A DNA stretch of 60,084 bases, filler included, from Dugesia japonica (GCA_001938525.1; 5 parts of 5 records of this genome joined end to end with filler, not necessarily neighbours in it); one strand, 5' to 3'. Counted from the whole stretch's first letter, positions 35,323 to 48,899 are shown. Translations and numbers: made by a program. Notes: generated by a model not told the origin, from the sequence alone.

Positions 35323-36060
35323 ATATTTAATTAATCATTTCCTGAATGTAATACTACATCACTCCCCCGTCAGATGGAGGAGCATTTAAGATAAAGGCTG
35401 GACGAATTTTGTCTATAGAAATTCGCTCTGCTTGTCCTCGTCGCATTACTTCAATAACTTTTCCATCTTCATTTCTCCAAGTTACCAGATATGGACCTTC
35501 GTATACTGGCTGTAGTGGTCTTCTTAATTCGCGTTTGATCCATACAAATTTACATTTATCAGTTCTTTGTGGTATGACGTTTTCGTGACTTCATGTGATC
35601 TAAGACAGCTGTTTCGAAATTCTGTTGGAACTATTGTTTGTCCATCAAAGCATGATGGTAGAACAATATCACCTGGTAAACGGATATTAGTCCCAAAAAT
35701 TGTTTGGCATGGTGATAACTCNGAATCTTCCCCCACCGCGTTACGTATTCCTAACATTGTTAATGGAAGATTTTCTAACCAACTACATTCCGCTTTAGTT
35801 CCTTGAGTCCGTAGAGAATTCTTTAGAGACCTGTATTTTGAATCCAATCTTCTGCAGTATCTGAAGAACAATAAAAAATTTAGGCTTTGGAATAAGCATT
35901 TCTTGAGAAGCTTGTGGAAGATTTTTAAAAATCTTTTGTTGCTCTGCTTTTCTTTGCATAATAATGACACTAACTTATGCGTGGTCGCCAGTTAGATTTT
36001 GTAATTCAGAAGTAAACATTTTCAAAGTTTATTAAAATTAAATAAATCAATAATATTTTA
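35323..36060 (-). mobile_element. internally deleted or chimeric Gypsy remnant (PBS, integrase C-terminus, PPT)
   Basis: PBS-like TGGCGACCACGC at ~35991-35980. WLENLPLTMLGIRNAV..LSP..IFGTNIRLPG, PLQPVYEGPY (GPY module), ISIDKIRPA. PPT GGGGGAG at ~35362-35368. Confidence 0.8.
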
Positions 36061-36653
36061 ACAAATATTTTTAAATATATCTAACACTCACAATCGTCAG
36101 TTTTAGTCGAATTTAGATGATTTTGTTTAAATTTGCGGTAATTCGGGGAAAACTTCATTTTGTTTAAATGTTAAAATTTTTAAAACAAATTTTTATGGGA
36201 ATCCGGTTTAACTGCCCAAATTTTTAAAATTTTTGAATAAATTCTTTATCGATATTTTTACATCAATCGATGCAGAATTTAATAGGAATTATTTTCAAAA
36301 ATAAAGATTTTTCGAAAAAAAATTTGTTTTTCTCGTAACATGAAATCATAACGTATATTAGATGGAGAATGTTTTGCTGATCATTATGGTTATAACCTAA
36401 ACTTGCGAAATTTTATCCTGGATGAAATAAAAGAAGTTTTGTATAGAAAAATAGCAAATTTTCAATTTTGGCAATCAATATAACACGAATGGCTTCAAAT
36501 TGGGTATCATTGAACTCAGAATTAATAACTGACTGAACAAAGTTAAATTGCCATCTCAGGACAAATGTTTTTTAACGAAGATTGTTAGTCGTCCTACAAA
36601 ATAATTTGGGAGTATCTTTTGAGGAATCACTGATTTTTGAAACAAGAAAAAGT

Positions 36654-36690
36654 CAATTCCTGACGAAGACAAGGTCGAAATATCGAATTG
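36654..36690 (+). ncRNA. minimal type I hammerhead ribozyme (Penelope-associated type)
   Basis: CAAUUC-CUGACGA-A-GAC(AAG)GUC-GAAA-UA-UC-GAAUUG. Perfect 6-bp stem I, intact core, 3-bp stem II, and palindromic AUAU in place of stem III. Confidence 0.75.
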
Positions 36691-36929
36691 TTATCCAATA
36701 TCAATAATTAAAACCTAAATTTTGATCTATGCTTTTATATTAAATGAAGAAAAAGTAACTCAAATTTGAACATCATCCAGTCTATTAGATAAAGAATTTA
36801 TTGTCGGGTAGGCAATTGAAAACTAGCAATTCATTGTTTAAAAGATTAGTATGGTAAAATGTATATTTTTAAAAAACTTTTATTTTTGTAGCCGAAATAT
36901 AATATTCACATAAAATATGTTGAAATTAA

Positions 36930-39013
36930 TTCGATATTGAAATACTTTTTTCCATCAACGGATGGAGCTACAGATAAATGTGAAAAGTGTAGTGTGGTTT
37001 TAAAAACTGCCGGAGGATCTATCAAAGGACTGCATACACATCTGTTTTCAATACACATAATGAAAATTCATGGGCCATCTTCTGTCAGTTCTACCGATAA
37101 AACCACTAAATCACCTGTTCGACCGTTGAAAAGAAAATTAATATCCGACTATTATTTAACCAAAGAAGATCAATCACTTGACGCTGTGCTTGCACTGATG
37201 ACATTCAAAATGGTTTACCGTTCAATATATTTACTACATCGATTGATTTGAGAGCAGCTCTTAAGGCAAAGAATACCAGTGTCTTTCTTCTTCTGTAACT
37301 ACGATAAGGAATCGTGTTGTCGAATACAGTAAGAAAATTCGAAATAAGATTATTGGAGAAATTGATGAAAGTAAAAAAATGGAAAACGTTTTAGTTTGAC
37401 GAGTGGACATCGGTTACCAATAAACAATACATCAACATTAACGTCCACAGTGAAACTGGAAAATTTTGGAATATTGGTTTATCTCGGGTGCATGGATCAA
37501 TGCCAGNNGATGCTTATGTTCAATTATTGGAGAAACGTCTGGAAGATCATCATAAATCATTAAATAATGATACAGTTTCTATAGTAACAGACGGGTCAAG
37601 CGTTATGGTTCGATTTGGGAAACTTGTAACGCCTGAACATCAATTATGCATTGCTCATGGAATTCACCTAGCCATTTCTGAAGTCCTTTACAATAAAATT
37701 CCAGCTGAATCTTTGGAATCCTGCTATGAAGAAAATCCTGCATATCAATTTACTGATGAATACAAAGATGAAGAAGGATTTACAATAGTTCATTCTGTAT
37801 CTAAACATATAGATTTATCTGAAAATCATTGCATCCACGAAATAGTAAATAGAGTCAGAAAAATTGATATTTACATTTAAAAGATCACCCACGAAAAATG
37901 ATTCTATATATAAAAATACACAAAAAACGAGCATGGAAAAGAACTTTCACTTATATTGGAGCAGTCTGTATAATATGCTGGAACGATTTTTATTTTTAAA
38001 ACCATGTATACAAAAAACTTTATTAGATATAAAAAATTTTTTAGTGACATTTAATGAAAATGACTGAGTGAAAATTGAAGAAATTATACAAGTATTAAAA
38101 CCCCTAAAATTAGCGGTCGAAGCACTTTGCCGACGTAACACCAACTTGTGCTCAGCCGACGCAATTTTAAAATTCAGTTTTAGACAATTGACCCAGCTTA
38201 AGTCTCCATTGAGCAATGATTTATTAATGTCTCTACATAAACACATGTAGAAAACCGAAGCCGAAGAGATTTTATTTAATCCTTCATCATTGAATGACAA
38301 CAAAACAACTCGTAAAATTATGAAAGAAACTATTCAAAAACTTATTGAAAGATTTAATGACGTCATTGAAACGTCATCAATCGAAGTTACTTCAACGCAG
38401 TCATCCCACCAATTTGAACAAGAAACAATGAAAAAACAGTTACAAGATGAAATCGTAAAAAGCTTGATGACATGCGAACCAAAAATTCAAAATTTCACTA
38501 GGCTCATGTCAATTATAAAAAGAGAAATGGTGCTATTTGAAAGTGGAGGCTCGCGTGGTAATCACCTAGAACTGGCACACACATATCTAATAACAAAACC
38601 CCCAACAAGTGTACAAGTTGAACGTGTTTTTTGGCAGTAGGCTGCCTAGGTAAAAAAATTAGATCCCGGTTAAACGATAAAACACTTGATGCTTTATTGT
38701 TACTTCGTGCATATTATTCAATATAGGGTTGTATGTTGTTATCAAATAAAGAAATAAAATTGTTTTACTTTTTTATTTATATTATATTATTTTCCAATTT
38801 AACCTCAAGTCCAAAATTATACGTACATTATATATTTTACATAAGCAAATGTCAAAATAAATTGTATTATTCGTTTTAAACTATTTTTATCGATAAAATA
38901 ACATAGCTAATGTTAAATAAATAAGAAAAATATCCCTAATCCGATTCCGGGACCAACTAATTCAAATCCCTAAATCCTGGGATCAAAATTTTGGCCCGGG
39001 ATCAAAAACCTTA
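36930..39013 (+). mobile_element. hAT element remnant (BED finger to dimerisation domain) with right end
   Basis: KYFF..KCEKC..GGSIKGLHTHL..H, DEWTS, TDGSSVM, HQLCIAHGIHLA, PPTSVQVERVF. CCGGGA-type repeats at 38930-39013 end in CCTTA. Confidence 0.9.
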
Positions 39014-42000
39014 CCCACCACTGATTAGTCGTTAAATTTTAATGATTTAAATTTAAATTTTAATGTGATGACAAATTTATATGTTGACTTTGAATTTTAA
39101 TGTTCTTTGGTGCGAGTTTTTAATATTAAGTACTTATTTTTCGATTTATTTCCTCAGAGATAAACATTCGGAGATTTTAAACCATGTTATTCTTACTCAG
39201 CGTAAAGTTTTCTATCAAATAGATATTTTGATGGTAAAAATCGAATGAATGTTGAAATAAATTTAAGATGATTAATTTAGTAATTACAATTAATTGATTA
39301 CAATTTAAATATTACGAATTTAAATTAATCAATTTTAAATTAATTTTTCAATGATCATTAATAATATGATCAAAAATCGTCAAACTTTACATACGCCAAG
39401 GAATAATGATCAGAAAAAATTCTCTATCTAATAGACATGATGATTTCATGTTGAGAAAGAAATTTTCGAAAAAGTTTTTTTTGAAAAAAAATTCCCATCG
39501 AATTTTACATCGATTGATTTAAAAATCTCGTAGATTTTTTCAAAAAATTTAAATATTTAAACATAATGGAGTTTTCCTAAATTTTCTCAAATTTTAACTT
39601 CAAAATTTAAACAAAATCATCAAAATTCTAACAAAACTGACCATTGTGAGCCAAGATTTGGCGGAAATCAACCAATATGAGGAAATTTTCAACGAAAATT
39701 TAACCAATTTAACCATAATTGCCCAAAACCTACCAAATATCGACAATCCTGAGGAAGTTCCTTAATAAAAGTAACCAGGTTCGCCATCACCGAGTTATTT
39801 TTATTACCAAAATTAAAAAAAACGATATTAAATAACAGAAAAATGGATTTTAAGCGAGGTAAAATGCAAAAAAAACAGTTATTAAACGAATCATTTCATT
39901 AGTTCTCTTCCAGAAACTTATCGCGAAACTTATTCGTGAAGGTATTCATTTTTTAAAACCACTGTTATCTTCTGCTCTACCAGCCAGAAGCGAAAGCCGC
40001 TATCATTTTCAAAATTTCTTTCTTAACTTTCTCTAGTATCCAGTATTTTATTGCAAGTTTTTCAAGGAAAATTAAACTGAAAATTGTGAGTTTGGTGATC
40101 GCTTATATACTTATTTTTCTGGTTAGTTTTAGCAACCATCCCTCAAAATCATGCCAATTTTTAGTCTTTTTGATTGATCAAAATTGATTCGCCTATCAGT
40201 CTATTATTCTTAGAATTTTTTCAGATTTTTCTTAAACTTTTTTGTTACTATTTTGAGTGACATACTCTAATTGGACCCTTATAAAAGAATCAATAACTTT
40301 CTTCATAATGCTTGTCTCACTTTTTAACTTCGATTTTCTAATTTTCCTGCATATTTTACATCAAACTGTTCTTACATAATCAATTTTCGTTCATGGTAAC
40401 CTTACGTTTTCTGTCATTTAATTTTTTAATCATAAATTGCAAAGTAAATCAATAAAATTATTCTGTAATTAATTAATTAATTTTACTATTTTGTTCTTTC
40501 ATTTTATTTTTGGTTAATAATTTCAGTGACAATTGTCATTGTACCAATTTGCTGTCATTAACTAATTTTTTAATTAATTTTCATTTATTCTTTCGATTTA
40601 TCTGCGATTATTTTTATTAACTGATTAAGTAATTACTTTTCTTTGTTATATTTTTATTGGTATTTGTTTGTCGTCGTCCTTGTTATTCTTGTTTTGCTGC
40701 TATTTATACGTGCTGGTGTAATTCTTCTCCTAATATTCAGAACTAGTTTTCACTTCCTTTCCCGATATCAAGTGTTTCACCCCAACACATGTACTAAAAC
40801 CTTTTTTGTGATAAACCAAAATGTTATGCTTCTAAAATTTGGTGATAGTTGCTGGTAGAAAGAGATCATAATATTACAGGAAAGAGCACTGCAAAGACAT
40901 TGGTTCAGCCAAAAACGAGAGATCACCATGATATAAACTACCAGGGTGATGTCAGAAATTATCCAAGGTGATACAGAGCAACCAACATAAAAACCTCGTG
41001 AAATGTATATTCAAGAGAAACTGAAATAAATCCAGAAAATGAAACAACGAATCATTGAAAATGATGTTTTTAATTAAACAAGCACTTTTGAACAAATGAA
41101 TTGTTTTGTTATAAGCCGAACCAATAAAAGGCTGCTGATATTTATAAGTAGGCCTACCGCAAGGACACATGAAATCCAAGAAAAGAAGGAAATCAATGCG
41201 AAAGTAAAGATTTATCAAATAGAAAATCAAGAAACAACGAGATAACGTATAAAAACGAAATATCAAAAAGCTTCTGAACTCAACATCTCCAATAATTTTA
41301 AATAAATCTCCAACTCACATTTGAGGAATAACACGATCTTAAGTAGTTTGTATTACAAAATCAGTCGTTCTTGCTATAAAGCTTCGAAGCTCAAAACTGG
41401 CATAGATAAATCCAGAAATCAGAGATAAAGACGCATTTGTAATTGGAAACTACTAATCAATGAACTCAGTTATTATGCTTACAAATGACTGATTGAAAAT
41501 GAGTGTCGAGAGAAGAGAAAAATTATAGAGATAATTATACATCGGAAATAAATGTTTCTTTTGCAAAAGACTGTTATTTTATGAAGAGTACTAATTAAAT
41601 TAAATAACAATGTATTAAATACCTAACATGATATATAATTTTAGATGAATTCCATCACCGGAGAACCAGTATCACTGATAATCTTCTTAGACCAGAAAAG
41701 GTCGGTGGAGTGGACTGCGTTGAAGTCAGAAGTTAAGCGACTGAAAGCAGAGAAAGAGGACGTTGAAAATAAGTACATGGTTATAAAAGATGCTAAACAA
41801 GAGCATATTGGTCATTATTAGACAATCTTATGTAAACAATGTGATGCCTTTATTAATGAATATGCGTCAAATGAAATTACTATTCCCGGCCAACTGCTTA
41901 TTAAAATAAAAATTTATTCGTTCCAGCTGTTTTCTTGAGCCAAGAGAGATGTGAGTATCTATTGAATCAAGACGAATTATCCTAATAACTGGCTTAAAAA

Positions 42001-42780
42001 GAAAAGCAGCGATGTTTATTGGAAATACTCGCAGCTCCTAGGATGTGAAAATCAGAATGGATAGAAAAATGAATAAAAAATAACGTTTAACAAAAATAAA
42101 AACATTTTATTTAAATTTTTTTGAAAACTAATATCTCATAATTAATGAAATTATTAAAATACAAAATATATTTTAATTTTAAGAATTTTTTCTTATAAAA
42201 TTATATTTTCAATTTGAATGAATAAAATATTTTCACGACTTCAGAGTCAATTCGGATATTCCATATACAATTAGCGTAATTTCATTAAAATTTATTGTTT
42301 CACTTGAAGTTACCGATTTGTTATTAATTATTTTCTAGTTTTTTCAATCTTTCGAAAATTTGAAATTAATTTTGATATTCGCATTTTGTAAAATATTTGA
42401 ATAAAGTAAAACAAAAATAAAAATAATTTAACAATTTCATTTTAATAATAAAATTTGTCAAAAATTATATTTGAAAAATAAATATAAAAATTTTCAACCA
42501 ATAAAAGTTTATAAAAATGAATTTTATTTATTTTAAGAAATTATTATTTATTTTGTGATAAATTAATGATGATGATAATAAATTTCTTTATCAAAAATGA
42601 CCAACATCAATACTCCAAAATCGTAATTGATCATCAAAAATAAAATTGATAGATTATTCCAAGATAAATCAATAAATTATAATGAAATATTCTCAATCTA
42701 CAACTTGTTCTATGCACAGAATCAATCAAATAATTCCAATCAATATTTGCAACAGAAATTATTATGTTTTGCATTATTCA

Positions 42781-45136
42781 TTATAATTTCTGTACACAAA
42801 TTTCACAATATTTACTAGATTCATAATTGTATTTATATCCACATTTGTAACACCATTTTGTGTATTTATTTTCACCACGACAAGAAGAATTCTGACAATA
42901 ATAATAACGTGAAATATCATTTATATGGGAACATCTAACACAAATCCATATTTGATCAGTCCCATCACCTTTACACCGCAACATTGGTTTACCAATATTG
43001 ATTTTATCAGCATATCGATCGAGTCCACAATGTTTGCAATATTTCTCATTTCCCACATTTCTATTCTTACAAAATCGATACCAACAAGTCCAAGTTTCAT
43101 CTCGAGCATTCAAACAATCCCCACAAAGATCATCACAAATGATCTCACTATGTTTGCATTTGGAACAATATTTTATTGTTTTATTAACATTTACCTCTCC
43201 ACAAGCAGCACAATAATCATTCCATATTTGATTGCGCATTGTGCAGTGCTTGCAACTCCACATCTCAATTCTTGGTGATTGGCATTGTTTGCAGGAGAGA
43301 GATTCTCGATCATTCCCACATTGACATTTGCTACATTTCCATTTATTATTATCTTCATCACGTTCTATCACCACATTATCACTTTGTATCACCACATTAT
43401 CACTTGGTATCACCACATTATCACTTGGTATCACCACATTATCGCTTTGTATCATCACGTAATCATCAATCATTTTATCTTTACCATTATCACTTTCACC
43501 TTTAACATTACATTTTGATCGATAACATTTATCACAAATTGATTTATTCAAATCATAATTGATATGATCACATGCACAACAAATCCACACTTGTTCTATC
43601 TTACCAAATTTACTCATCTCAACAGTTGCTCCTCTCTGTCGATTAACTGATTTATCGAGTCCACAATATGTACAATACAACTCATTTCCACCATTTCTCT
43701 TCTTACATCCTCCATACCAACAAATCCAACTCTCAGTTCTCCCATCTTTCTCGAAATTTTTCTTATTATCTTTTTTAATACTTCCATCTTTACCATCAAA
43801 TTTGAATTCATAACATTTACCACAAAGTGATCTATACAACTCATAATTGATAATATTACATGCATAACAAATCCACACTTGTTCTATCTTACCATATCTC
43901 ATTATATCAACAGCTGCTCCTCTCTCTCGATTTGCTGATTTATCGAGTCCACAATATGTACAATACAACTCATTTCCACCATTTCTCTTCTTACATTCTC
44001 CAAACCAGCAAATCCAATCATTATTATCTGCTCTATTTTCACGTAATTCCTCGCATATTTTACATTTCTCAGAAGATATTTCATTAGCAAATGTACATTT
44101 TCTACAATTCCATTCTGCGCGTGCCTCCATGCAAACAGTGCAATTCACATATTCATCTTCATTAACAACTCCACAGTGCTTGCATTTCCATTTGATCCCG
44201 TCCAAATTAACTTCATCATGTTTACCAGCAAGCTGACTACCAGATTCTTTATCGTGTTTGTTATCATCACTATTTATCACTTCTTTATTTGCAACAGAAT
44301 CTGTGTCGCGATTTGTATTAGTTTTGTGTTTGTTATCATCTCTATTTATCCCTTCTTTATTTGCAACAGAATCTGTGTTGCGATTTGTATTAGTTTTGTG
44401 TTTGTTATCATCTCTATTTATCCCTTCTTTATTTGCAACAGAATCTGTGTTTCGATTTGTATTAGTTTTGTGTTTGTTATCATCTCTATTTATCACTTCT
44501 TTATTTGTAACAGAATCTGTGTCGCGATTTTTAGTAATTTTTATCTCCTCAATTTTGCTTTTCTCGTATTTATCAATCTCTTTCTCATAAATTGTTAGTA
44601 AAGATTCCTTGCAATTTGAACATTCCAAATCAGTTGGCAATATATCTGTTTCACAAATTTGACATTTTAAATTTCCTGAGCGTTCCTTATCAACAGTCTT
44701 AAAATTAGTATCAAAGTCAATTCAAAATAAAATTAATCAATTACGGTTTTATAGATTTTTATAATTTCCAAATTTCTAGCAATAAGAAAATAGAAAACAT
44801 ATTGATACAATTTATCAATAACTTCCGATTTATCACGTTTATCAACACAGAATGATTCACCAATAGGTGGGTCCTCATTATGTGAATTTGGTAAACTCGA
44901 CTGAAATAGAAAATTATTCTTGTTATAAACAATTTAATTCACAAAATTATTAACTTCTTGTTCCCCTACGTGATCATGATCGTCACTAGGTGTCTCACTG
45001 TGTAAATTATCCGAATCCAACTTATATAATAAATAATTTAGTAATACAGCACTTAATTTACTTCATTAATAGCTTTTGATTTCTTACAACATGAATTATT
45101 AGAAGATTCTTTTTCACACGAATTCTCTAAATCTGA
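42781..45136 (-). CDS. multi-RanBP2/NZF-type zinc finger protein (~13 C4 fingers); 5' end uncertain
   Basis: The terminal exon 44697-42781 carries repeated W-x-C-x2/4-C-x3-N-x6/7-C-x2-C motifs. Phase-0 upstream exons 44900-44745, 45020-44955 and 45136-45062 have canonical AG/GT and ~40-55-nt introns. A further exon is likely at ~45270-45203. Confidence 0.9.
43360..43460. repeat. 21-bp coding tandem repeat (SDNVVIP/Q) x~5
   Basis: tatcaccacattatcactt units inside the zinc finger exon. Confidence 0.92.
44250..44530. repeat. 66-bp coding tandem repeat x4 (NRNTDSVANKEGINRDDNKHKT)
   Basis: Four near-identical 22-aa units in the ORF. Confidence 0.95.
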
Positions 45137-46638
45137 CTGAATAGAAAATAATTGTATTTTACAAACCTAATTTAACAAATACAAAATAATCGATATTTTA
45201 ACCAATAAAATAGAATTCTGCAGGTGATCTTCAATTGTGGTAATATTACAAAATTTACATCTTATATCTATTCTGAATCAATATTTGAACATTTTGTTCA
45301 TTTAATTAATTCTTTTCTTTTAATATATAAAAGTTGACAAAAAAATTCTCAATCAACACTTCGCCGTGATATCATATTTTATCAATAACTAAAGCATGCA
45401 AAGAAGGCAATATAAAAGCAAACGCTAAGAGCATGATTTAATGTATTTGTTAATTTACTATTTATTTATTTATTTTCATACCGCATTATCAATTTTTTAA
45501 TCGAAATATTTTTAATTTTTGTTATTTTTAGTTGATAATTTCTCACGACTCTTTTAATCCTGTGTAAAACCAAAGCAAATTGATGAAAAGTAATCAGTTA
45601 AATGGAGAGAAGGAAATCAGGAACCTAAAGTCTAAAAGGCAGGTTTATTATTGATTTAATTAAATCAAAACTTTGATGTGAAAGTAAAGGGTATGTGTGT
45701 GACACCAAGTCATTGATGTAATTTTGAAACAATGAATAAAAGATTCTGTTTATATAGGTTTTTAATGATGTGTGTGTATAATTAAATGTTGTTGATACAG
45801 TAAAACAATTCATTCCAGAACATTCTTATTGAAATTAAAATAATTAATTTATTTAAAATTAAATTAATTTGGTTTATAATTAATATTTATTTTTCTTTTA
45901 TATCTTTTTATCTATAAAACTTGACGATTTCTAACTACGTTTTTCCTACTCATCGTAAATTCTCTATCTAATTGATACCTTGATGTTCGAATTTGAGTTA
46001 ACCTTTAAGTGAAAGTAAAACTAAATGAATAAATAAAAACGGACGAGTAATTGGCTAAAAGAAAATTGTAGTAAATGGGCGAATAAAAGTCAAAATATCA
46101 TTATTATACAAAGCAAGATATTAAAATCAAATTGATCAAATGAAGTTGAATATCCACAAGAAAGTTAAAGTGAAAAGAATGCACTAAACCTGAAATTAGT
46201 CGTAAAAAAATTAAAGATATGAAATGAAGTAGTGAATCAAAGTAGAAGATCAAACCGAAAAGATAAAATTGAATTATTGAAATGAAATGGAGATTGTAAT
46301 ACTAGATAAAAAGCCAAACTGTGACATAATTATAGCCGAAATCAGATTATAATGATAAAACGAACTGGATATTAATGATACATTTAGAAGAAGATGAATA
46401 CAGTGATGTCTTTCTTAGCCTTCTTCTTTCTTATCTTTCTACATGAATTTTGATATTTCATAGTAATTTTAAATTCAAATTAGATGTTTTTTTATATTTT
46501 GGAATACTTTTTGAAAAAATTTTATATTAGTAATATCAAATTATTGCATAATTTAATAATCATTTGGATTAAATGTATTCTTTTACAAATTTTATAATAG
46601 TTAACAATCTTGTATTTATTATGATTCGGGTTACATAT

Positions 46639-48861
46639 AGTTACAATATACTTGTCCTCTATCATATTTCAATAACAACTAAGATTAGAATATTTATTAA
46701 ATATAAATTATAACGTTAATTCATATTATTCAAACAGCATTATTACGAATTTCCATAACTCTCCCTTCCTCCAAAACGTTGTCCATCTTTTTAGCCATTC
46801 TATTCTTTTGGTTTTCAAACCATTTGGAAAACTTGATTTCTACTTGATGTGCTGCTACATATCTCACTATCCGGTATGGCCTTTCATACACCAAACCGTT
46901 TTTCTTTTGTTTGTGTAGTTCTACTCGGAATAATACCCATTCTCTCTCTTTAAAGCATCTTTGTCCTCACTTATCTTTCTCGTAATTTTTCATTTTCTGC
47001 GCCACCCTCTCCAAATTTTATCGCACTATATCTTCTTTAACTGTCCTTCCTTTTGAGAGCGTTTCCTCTTTGGTATGAGGATTTATCTTTTTACCAAATA
47101 CGATTTCGAAAGGAGAGAATTTTGTAGACTCTTCTATTGTAACATTAATACTAAATTCTACTCACGGTAATAATGTCTACTAATCTTTCTCATTACATTT
47201 CCATTTTATTGATATTGTAATCATATCCTTCACTGTTCGGATCATCCGTTCTACCAAACCATTCGACTGGTGTTGATACGGGGAACTAAACTCCTTTACA
47301 ATTCCAAATTTTCCTAGTTTCTTTGCCATCACTTGACTTTCAAACACTTCACCTCTGTCAGTCAGAATGGATTTTGGCTTACCAAAACGGCATATTCATT
47401 TGTTCAAAATTATCATAAAAATCGTCTCTTCATTCATTTTTGAAACTGCAGATAAGCTGACTAGTTTGCTAAAACGATCAATTATTACCACCATATATTT
47501 CTTATCAGACTTGCTCTGTTCCATATGAGCTATGTCCTCTACGATTTGTTCTAAAAAAAATATTTCTTCTCCACGGTATAAGTGTTTCTTTTGTACGACT
47601 TTGTACTACTTTCCTTTTGGCACACATCTTGCATTCATTAATACTTGTATTAATTGTCTTGCGCACCCCTGGCCAGAAATAACCATCTTGTACGTATGAA
47701 AATAACATTTTTCTTCCCAGATGACATAAATCTTCATGAATTTCCTTTATCACTTTATCCACTATGCTTGTTGGAACTACCAACAAAAAATTTATTTTCT
47801 CTTTCCACTACTAACAAATCATTCACTATTTTCAATTTGTGCTTCAGTTTATTCCAGTAACTTCCTTGTTCACTATTTTTAGTCTCTAAACCTTCTAGCA
47901 ACATTGCTACACAGCGTTGTATTTCTGAATCTTCTGTCTTAGCCTGTCGAATCATTGTAATAATATCTGTCTCATGATGAGTTAAATTGTTGTTTCACTC
48001 TGCTTTTTCTCTTTTTGCGTCTGTGTGTTTTATGCTACATTGTGAACATACACTATCCATTGGCCTCGACAACCCCTCCGCACTGTTGTGTTCTTCTGAA
48101 TTGACCTTCCTTTGTACTAAACTAATGACATCCCTTGACTGTTCTGATAACTCTACTTGATAATAAGCTTGGCACCGGATCAATCGATGAAAAGAATTTC
48201 CAGCCAGATAAACAATCTAATAACAACTGAATTTCTGGCATTGGAAAAGAGACTTTTCACTCCAAAATTCTGGGTGGATCTGTCTATGATGACTTTAATT
48301 TTCTTGTTCCATTGTAGACTAAATTCTACTATACCCAACGGTTTTTCTCCGTCCTTATTAAATGCTCCATTTAATCCGATATTGTACATCGACAACAACG
48401 GTTTCTAAAATCAGCTCTGAAAACGATTTTTTTATCATGTGTCTGTAAGCCATCTTTTGACTTCCTCCGTTGTGATCTCAATCTTTTTAAAATCTATCCA
48501 AAGAATTCCTGCTTCATCTGACAATAGCAAATGAAAGATATCCAACAAATTAAAATCGTTAACGATAGTTTACTCCTCGATATACTTAAATCATTTGAAG
48601 CTTCTTCTGCAACTGTTCCGTTATATTTTCTGACATTAAAATTTATTAATTCTTGCGCTTTTTTTGGTAACGCATTTAAAATTGCTTTCTGTTGATGCTT
48701 TTACCTTGTAACAGCATTCACAGTTTTGGCGTGGTTGCCAGTTACAATAATCTTATCCTCTATCATATTTCAATAATAACTAAGATTAGAATATTTATTA
48801 AATATAAATTATAATGTTAATTCATATTATTCAAACAACGTTATTTCGAATTTACAAAACT
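46639..48861 (-). mobile_element. internally deleted Gypsy element with two ~120-bp LTRs
   Basis: Direct repeats 46639-46760 and 48740-48861 (minus-strand termini AGTT...TAACT). PBS TGGCAACCACGCC and PPT GGAGGAAGGGAG. Integrase motifs IHEDLCHLG..YFWPG..CKMC, ILTDRGEVFES and PYQHQSNGLVER. Confidence 0.92.
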
Positions 48862-48899
48862 CATTTAATAATAAATTTTATAATTAAAGTAATCTTAAT

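Follow-up and report, generated by a model that had tools for sequence, protein, structure and literature searches.

The window analyzed here, a 60,084-nucleotide stretch of DNA from Dugesia japonica (filler included), carries on its minus strand a multi-exon, protein-coding host gene, which is visible at positions 42781-45136 and has its 5' end beyond. Its core is a frame that stays open on translation from 44721 to 42784 (646 codons) and closes with a stop codon at 42781-42783. The G+C content of the region is 21-35%, the ORF lying within AT-rich DNA of ∼30% G+C, and at such a composition an estimated ∼8% of random triplets are stops; a frame of this length is therefore not attributable to chance. 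The ORF product contains 57 Cys and 15 Trp, and its first Met occurs only at residue 197, such that upstream exons are required. The predicted coding exons are as follows.

45062-45136, minus strand: coding exon of 75 nt in phase 0, whose product is acidic and rich in Ser; acceptor ttctattcag, donor gtaaat, with the frame open through the splice chain.
44943-45020, minus strand: coding exon of 78 nt, phase 0, preceded by a 41-nt GT-AG intron and followed by one of 42 nt, the frame being kept.
44745-44900, minus strand: coding exon of 156 nt, encoding the family's conserved N-terminal 'LYxYV...' region; homologous to the relative P0001 and to metagenome contig L002.
42781-44697, minus strand: large terminal coding exon with all 13 fingers; a 47-nt intron with the acceptor ttttaag precedes 44697.

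All three predicted GT-AG introns (41, 42, and 47 nt) are in phase 0, the reading frame is unbroken throughout, and position 45136 is the acceptor of the upstream exon. No in-frame ATG is present in the three upstream exons, which places the true 5' end farther upstream than 45136; a scan of 45137-46638 found no in-frame ATG with a plausible donor. The exon-3 peptide aligns to residues 22-67 of P0001 with a score of 54 (shuffles, 23.9 ± 4.2), as well as to the exon that precedes the first finger in L002, the contig that encodes the relative P0007, with a score of 61 (shuffles, 20.6 ± 4.3). Moreover, seven residues past the aligned block, L002 contains a 45-nt GTAAGT...TAG intron at the identical position and phase. 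Because this intron is conserved between proteins that are ∼30% identical, the locus is hard to reconcile with chance or with a dead ORF. The original prediction had extended a protein built almost entirely of zinc fingers over the whole of 42781-45136; the gene does span this interval, but the fingers occur only within 42781-44697, and the remainder (44698-45136) consists of the three short exons and three introns, with no fingers.

A regular-expression count identified 13 in-register C4 fingers in the ORF, which are arranged, together with low-complexity repeats, in the following order.

44611-44670, minus strand: finger 1, an N-terminal CxxC-x10-CxxC ribbon with neither Trp nor Asn; kept in all four full-length relatives, with C20, C23, C34, and C37 invariant (alignment A2).
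44254-44541, minus strand: four tandem 72-bp (24-residue) low-complexity repeats (TRF period 72, 4.0 copies, 94% match; family D1).
44131-44190, minus strand: finger 2, WKCxHC..V-V-N..CxVC, an exact match to the RanBP2 pattern.
44053-44112, minus strand: finger 3, NZF-type, WNCRKCTFAN (ORF residues 204-223); T-F follows the second Cys, and the last CxxC contains Ile.
43813-44016, minus strand: twin-finger unit A, in which a linker of ∼20 residues joins a C-x4-C 'WxCW' finger to a second finger (alignment A1, AlphaFold2).
43525-43728, minus strand: twin-finger unit B, a tandem duplicate of unit A (repeat D2, blastn self-match, codon comparison).
43357-43465, minus strand: five tandem 21-bp (7-residue, SDNVVIx) repeats (TRF period 21, 5.2 copies).
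43201-43341, minus strand: fingers 8 and 9, adjacent C-x2-C fingers at ORF residues 461 and 488, both exact matches to the RanBP2 pattern.
42799-43173, minus strand: C-terminal block, comprising a Trp-less ribbon (finger 10), twin unit C (42880-43092), and a terminal ribbon (finger 13) (alignment A3 with P0001, P0003, P0006, and P0007).

Seven of the 13 fingers match W-x-C-x(2,4)-C-x3-N-x6-C-x2-C exactly, which we take to be the PROSITE PS01358 pattern. Three more, each the second finger of the repeated unit, depart from it by a single additional residue or by a last knuckle of the C-x4-C type (10 fingers match with one residue of slack), and the remaining three are simple CxxC...CxxC ribbons that lack the Trp/Asn frame (ORF residues 18-37, 517-536, and 622-641). 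When the residues of the protein were shuffled 2000 times, the strict pattern appeared on average 0.0005 times, as compared with the seven occurrences observed, and generic C4 patterns occurred 1.5 times, as compared with 20. These counts bear out the original prediction of about 13 RanBP2/NZF C4 fingers, including a single finger with the TF signature WNCRKCTFAN and three C-x4-C fingers with a 'WxCW' motif, which we find at ORF residues 236-257, 332-353, and 544-565. Its further claim that the protein has no catalytic domain agrees with our Pfam scan, in which no domain besides the fingers was detected. Against the short, divergent PF00641 domain (Zn_ribbon_RanBP), the protein scores 16.6 bits, with a gathering cutoff of 27, and its best Pfam stretch comprises ORF residues 484-508; the pattern, the predicted fold, and homology together argue for its membership in the RanBP2 class. 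Indeed, 7-10 of the 13 fingers have the Trp/four-Cys/Asn scaffold of RanBP2-type fingers (PF00641), and the modeled fingers lie within ∼1 Å of solved ones. The protein differs from this type in its three fingers without Trp and Asn and in the second finger of the unit, which has one residue more between Asn and the third Cys.

To place this array among known proteins, we searched 1.84 billion protein representatives exhaustively with HMMER. This returned 42 matches at E ≤ 1e-3, of which only the following five have the layout of the D. japonica protein.

P0001 (UniParc UPI0006083CBA): 672 aa, E 2e-69, 36% identity; UniParc only.
P0002 (UPI00060CA33A): 665 aa, E 2e-29; UniParc only.
P0003: 485 aa, E 1e-19; one ENA assembly.
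P0006: 229 aa, E 8e-8; same ENA assembly as P0003.
P0007: 275 aa, E 1e-7; JGI metagenome.

These five relatives are 28-36% identical to the D. japonica protein, and all of them are singleton clusters; the remaining matches are generic RanBP2-finger proteins, e.g., Nup153-like proteins of Chenopodium. No protein at least 50% identical to ours was found among the 1.84 billion representatives. A word-index protein search came back blank or with the query only, and the same search misses P0001 when started from an alignment containing P0001, which makes its blanks uninformative. The ESM Atlas returned nothing specific for the D. japonica protein (0.75 to an unrelated bacterial cluster) and generic RanBP2 clusters only for P0003, and a search for literature on such a finger family in flatworms found nothing relevant. 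With five relatives at most 36% identical among 1.84 billion representatives, the architecture is indeed as unfamiliar and lineage-restricted as had been claimed.

The D. japonica protein is collinear with P0001 over residues 82-671 (alignment A2, tblastn), and the four long proteins share one order of elements, namely an N-terminal ribbon, a low-complexity spacer, a WKCxHC...CxVC finger, an NZF-like finger, twin units, and the C-terminal block, with the WKCxHC...CxVC finger absent from P0001 in A2. The number of twin units among the relatives varies from 1 to 5, and their low-complexity repeats differ from those of the D. japonica protein. As aligned, the family has a fixed frame: the ribbon at the N terminus and one conserved single finger open it, and the C-terminal block closes the protein, with a variable count of twin units in between. 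Two of the relatives come closer to the Pfam domain than our protein does, P0003 scoring 30.3 against PF00641 (above the cutoff of 27) and P0002 25.4. The collinear frame, the twin units, and the shared C-terminal block are all found in the D. japonica protein, and we consider it very probable that its gene is real and belongs to a new, very small, uncharacterized family.

Arrays of RanBP2/NZF fingers are also borne by calpain-15/SOL, Nup153, TRABID/ZRANB1, and HOIP, and such proteins appear among the weak matches; a fragment of one of these genes, with its catalytic part off the piece, would have a similar appearance. The ends of the proteins speak against this. The D. japonica protein stops just after its last finger, as do P0001, P0003, and P0006, and since the relatives in alignment A3 (P0001, P0003, P0006, and P0007) end at the same last ribbon, there is no missing C-terminal catalytic domain, which excludes calpain-15/SOL. 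Further, the full-length relatives (485-672 residues) contain no Peptidase_C2, OTU, RBR, or Nup153 domain in Pfam, the new family itself heads the match list of the exhaustive search, and the unseen part of our protein is a short N-terminus. Such a fragment is the least credible of all the explanations considered here, and we give it hardly any weight.

At the core of the family is the twin-finger unit of ∼70 residues, in which a C-x4-C finger, a β-hairpin linker, and a second finger follow one another (alignment A1 and AlphaFold2 model). Alignment A1 comprises 14 copies of the unit (three from the D. japonica protein, four each from P0001 and P0002, and one each from P0003, P0006, and P0007), which are mostly paralogous and form a shallow sample, and it has 11 invariant positions, namely W5, C7, C12, N16, C23, C26, C54, C57, N61, C69, and C72. 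In profile comparisons, the first half of the unit best matched finger 1 of ZNF265/ZRANB2 (E 0.004), and the second half matched fingers of Npl4, Nup153, RanBP2, RBM10, and HOIP (E 0.004-0.06). An AlphaFold2 model of 77 residues had a mean pLDDT of 92.5 and a pTM of 0.77, with the linker modeled as a β hairpin; the model of the C-terminal block was of low confidence (pLDDT 61.6) and was set aside. In the unit model, the fingers adopt a zinc-ribbon fold of ∼30 residues and superpose on those of (i) FUS (1.3 Å over 33 residues), (ii) ZRANB2 F2 (1.0 Å over 27), (iii) TRABID NZF1 (0.6 Å over 28), and (iv) RBM5 (1.2 Å over 30). Foldseek and exhaustive VIA-align searches matched single fingers only (FUS, ZRANB2, RBM5, TRABID, Nup153, RanBP2, Npl4, and TAB2), with the best superpositions at 0.6-1.4 Å and Z ≤ 3.1, and neither search found a solved structure that covers both fingers. 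The modeled unit therefore looks like two RanBP2 fingers fused compactly together, without a solved counterpart.

The likeness of the first finger to those of ZRANB2 and FUS/EWS/TAF15 raises the question of RNA. Its C-x4-C first knuckle is shared with these proteins, and they are its closest match in both profile and fold, the first finger of the model being the one that superposes on FUS and ZRANB2 F2. The protein could be a multivalent binder of single-stranded RNA, with each C-x4-C finger reading a short GGU-like motif and the array providing avidity, and at the stacking position 17, Tyr is frequent in the relatives. In RNA-binding RanBP2 fingers, however, the bases are contacted by D4, N14, an aromatic residue at position 17, and N24, and fingers without the base-contacting residues failed to bind RNA (PMC6384913). 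The three C-x4-C fingers of the D. japonica protein instead contain K14, G17, N19, E20, and T24, with D4 present in only one of the three, and the base-contacting set is missing. An Arg pair at positions 19-20 is reported to contact RNA as well in the ZRANB2 structure. The D. japonica fingers also differ from the ZRANB2/FET type in having a Trp after the first Cys ('WxCW') and a hairpin that joins them to a second finger. We therefore regard RNA binding of the ZRANB2/FET kind as unlikely.

Units A and B recur with a period of 288 bp and are ∼86% identical at the nucleotide level (repeat search and blastn self-match). Judged by this periodicity and identity, unit B is a recent tandem duplicate of unit A, and the twin unit multiplies by tandem duplication. 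Codon comparison of the two copies gave 3.0 nonsynonymous and 2.0 synonymous changes in the first finger (dN/dS 0.33) and ∼20.5 nonsynonymous and ∼0.5 synonymous changes in the linker and second finger, and the density of nonsynonymous changes differs between these two parts (Fisher p = 0.003). Moreover, the 18 residue differences between A and B all lie outside the 12 scaffold residues (p = 0.017). As counted here, uniform neutral decay could not have produced this pattern. Outside the first finger, dN exceeds dS at a borderline level (Fisher p 0.01-0.07), the comparison involving a single pair of paralogues in which synonymous sites are very scarce, and NG86 may overstate dN/dS in AT-rich DNA; the excess is suggestive of diversifying selection on the second finger. 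Together with the variable repeat numbers and the recent tandem duplications, it makes the family look fast-evolving, a possibility that the original prediction had raised.

The finger gene lies in a neighborhood rich in transposon remains, including Gypsy and hAT. Later searches of this DNA covered the intervals 35323-42090 and 42130/42200-49636. Upstream of it and on the same strand is a degraded LTR retroelement with an Integrase_H2C2 domain (E 3.8e-14) and an rve_3 fragment. Direct repeats of 123 nt that are 92% identical mark the two limits of this element, at 46639-46761 and 48740-48862; it ends 1.5 kb upstream of the gene and excludes it. A repeat search and a blastn self-comparison found no direct or inverted repeats bracketing the finger gene, and a transposon-borne origin was rejected on both grounds. 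Across eight studies of this organism, 20 sequencing runs, whose RNA nature is presumed, contain 53-66% of the sampled words of 42600-45400, a share close to the exonic share of this interval. Several of the runs comprise only 9-67 million letters, which is too few to assemble a single-copy animal locus from DNA, and they are therefore probably RNA. From this word content of small runs, the finger gene is likely to be transcribed.

These observations also bear on whether the ORF could be untranscribed, transposon-borne, or decaying, its presence in the small runs then reflecting a high genomic copy number. The abundance of transposon remains nearby, the lack of a start codon in 45137-46638, and the presumed RNA nature of all of the runs that hold the locus would fit such a dead ORF. 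It is nevertheless difficult to see how one would keep a 646-codon frame intact in AT-rich DNA, together with short, frame-preserving introns, one of which is conserved in position with a distant homolog, and with constraint so uneven that the scaffold residues are untouched. In addition, no terminal repeats surround the gene, and its relatives are rare singletons rather than a high-copy family. We consider a dead ORF highly improbable and favor a living gene of the new family. Thus, the gene lies outside the neighboring retroelement and is not calpain-15/SOL, Nup153, or TRABID, these being the origins that the original prediction had set against its own reading.

Which partners the fingers might bind was examined from their residues. 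Fingers of the ubiquitin-binding NZF subclass bind the Ile44 patch of ubiquitin. In sequence, an NZF finger is defined by Trp, four Cys, and Asn, by a T-F/Y pair that follows the second Cys, and by a hydrophobic residue within its second CxxC (PMC11372445). Finger 3 alone has all of these features (T-F and C-K-I-C), and the other 12 fingers fail the definition. The best PDB sequence matches of finger 3 are the NZF1 of HOIP/RNF31 (E 0.0013) and the NZF of TAB2/3; the solved sequences nearest to fingers 8 and 9 are Npl4 and the RanBP2 ZnF. The protein resembles the NZF proteins (Npl4, TAB2/3, HOIP, TRABID, and CAPN15) in this one finger, and CAPN15, TRABID, and HOIP likewise contain NZF among non-TF RanBP2 fingers. 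It differs from them in that only one of its 13 fingers qualifies, in that the motif is lost in the relatives, and in that it has no enzyme or adaptor domain. At the equivalent position of finger 3, the relatives have S-L, S-F, T-L, or D-L in place of T-F. P0001, P0002, P0003, P0006, and P0007 share the layout, the twin units, and the C-terminal end of the D. japonica protein, and the P0007 contig shares its intron position, but none of them has a T-F finger. Ubiquitin binding by finger 3 is therefore plausible from its residues for the D. japonica copy, and it would not be a conserved activity of the family.

Finger 2 invites a comparison with Ran-binding fingers. It is the most alike single finger between the D. 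japonica protein, P0003, and P0007 (alignment A2), and it corresponds to the P0003 stretch that carries the above-threshold Pfam match. Finger 2 and its counterparts have V-V or V-L at the positions of the T-F of NZF fingers, where the fingers of Nup153 have the L-V or L-L used for Ran, and among solved fingers, those of Nup153 and RanBP2 are some of the closest in sequence and fold. The array might be linked to Ran or nuclear transport, as in Nup153 or RanBP2, with finger 2 binding Ran-GDP. However, the E-values of these matches are marginal (0.005-0.7), Pfam shows no FG repeats, no Nup153 N-terminal domain, and no Ran-binding domains, and finger 2 is missing from P0001 in A2. Such a role appears very unlikely, clearly more so than the reading of RNA.

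The original prediction had interpreted the protein as a ubiquitin and/or RNA adaptor. This part of it finds no support in either residues or conservation, since only one of the 13 fingers has the TF motif, which is lost in the relatives, and the C-x4-C fingers lack the base-contacting residues; its views on finger type, the absence of catalysis, and lineage restriction hold. We propose instead that the protein would act as a non-enzymatic, multivalent, zinc-dependent binding scaffold, in which (i) the first finger and the linker of each twin unit would serve as a conserved structural platform, (ii) the second finger would present a rapidly diversifying contact surface, and (iii) the one full NZF finger of the D. 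japonica copy could tether the scaffold to ubiquitin or to ubiquitinated proteins. This mechanism, a multivalent zinc scaffold of twin units with variable binding faces and one ubiquitin-type anchor, is put forward from sequence features as a tentative possibility and is more doubtful than not. When it is blended with the much firmer assignment to a new family, the explanation as a whole (a new-family gene encoding a binding scaffold) is somewhat favored.

In a bolder version, the twin unit would represent a novel, compact domain that binds two zinc ions and is restricted to one invertebrate lineage, with a platform and a positively selected second finger. We regard this as speculative and rather improbable, if a little less so than RNA binding. 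Were it true, the family would consist of tandemly expanding, rapidly evolving recognition modules, similar to other fast-evolving zinc-finger arrays, with possible roles in reproduction, in defense, or in policing selfish RNA or protein targets.

Few known recognition domains are smaller than the RanBP2/NZF fingers, and how these fingers acquire specificity is an open question. The present family provides an example from nature, with two fingers apparently welded together, the unit repeated a variable number of times, and change concentrated on one of the two. If confirmed, this would represent a new structural arrangement within the RanBP2 finger class. What is new here is the unnamed, nearly unsampled family and its fused twin unit with uneven constraint; the fold class was already known. 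Lineage-specific zinc-finger proteins are common, and the finding has no bearing on a long-standing open problem. As a lineage-specific family, however small, it would be readily amenable to RNAi and to binding assays. Proteins built entirely of RanBP2 fingers also occur in other eukaryotes, P0013 being one example.

The most upstream coding exon identified in the finger gene, the minus-strand gene encoding 13 RanBP2-type zinc fingers, begins at an acceptor at position 45136. Ahead of it lies one segment that may be a further exon:

45203-45262, minus strand: candidate extra upstream exon ('...RCKFCNITTIEDHLQNSILL'), phase 0 at its end, with GTTAAA as the donor

The GTTAAA donor lies 66 nt ahead of the 45136 acceptor, and the segment, which has a stop just upstream and contains no in-frame ATG, is a possible further upstream exon of the finger gene.

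Among the contigs carrying family members, L002 (JGI 3300031718, positions 1-1579) is animal genomic DNA within a metagenome, and the member that it holds has at least two short introns. Two paralogues, P0003 and P0006, occur in one ENA assembly (ERZ27256860) on L001 and L003; these contigs are intron-free and look like transcripts.

Opposite the 72-bp repeat array of the finger gene, the plus strand carries long antisense ORFs of 110-140 residues (44176-44598). These consist of one hydrophobic unit repeated, and they look like by-products of the tandem repeats rather than genes.

Upstream of the finger gene lies a retroelement with a 123-nt direct repeat at either end (46639-46761 and 48740-48862; the two copies are 92% identical):

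46639-48862, minus strand: degraded LTR-type retroelement, with integrase domains and with direct repeats at both ends
47505-47783, minus strand: Integrase_H2C2 domain of this element (E 3.8e-14)
47180-47347, minus strand: rve_3 fragment of this element, broken by stops

Later searches of this record took in the sequence on either side of a 36-base stretch at 42094-42129. Elsewhere in the same record, three successive ORF fragments on the plus strand (36937-38640), interrupted by frame breaks and one N, gave no significant Pfam match. Judged by sequence motifs only, they look like the remains of a hAT-type transposase: the start is BED-like (C..C..H..H), a block reading 'CIAHGIHL' is present, and the motif 'VERVF' stands at the C-terminal end. 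Finally, a 148-residue ORF occupies 35524-35970 on the minus strand, with one X due to an N in the sequence; its middle ('...SPCQTIFG...RLPGD') appears, by its residues, to resemble the C-terminal region of integrases from retroelements.
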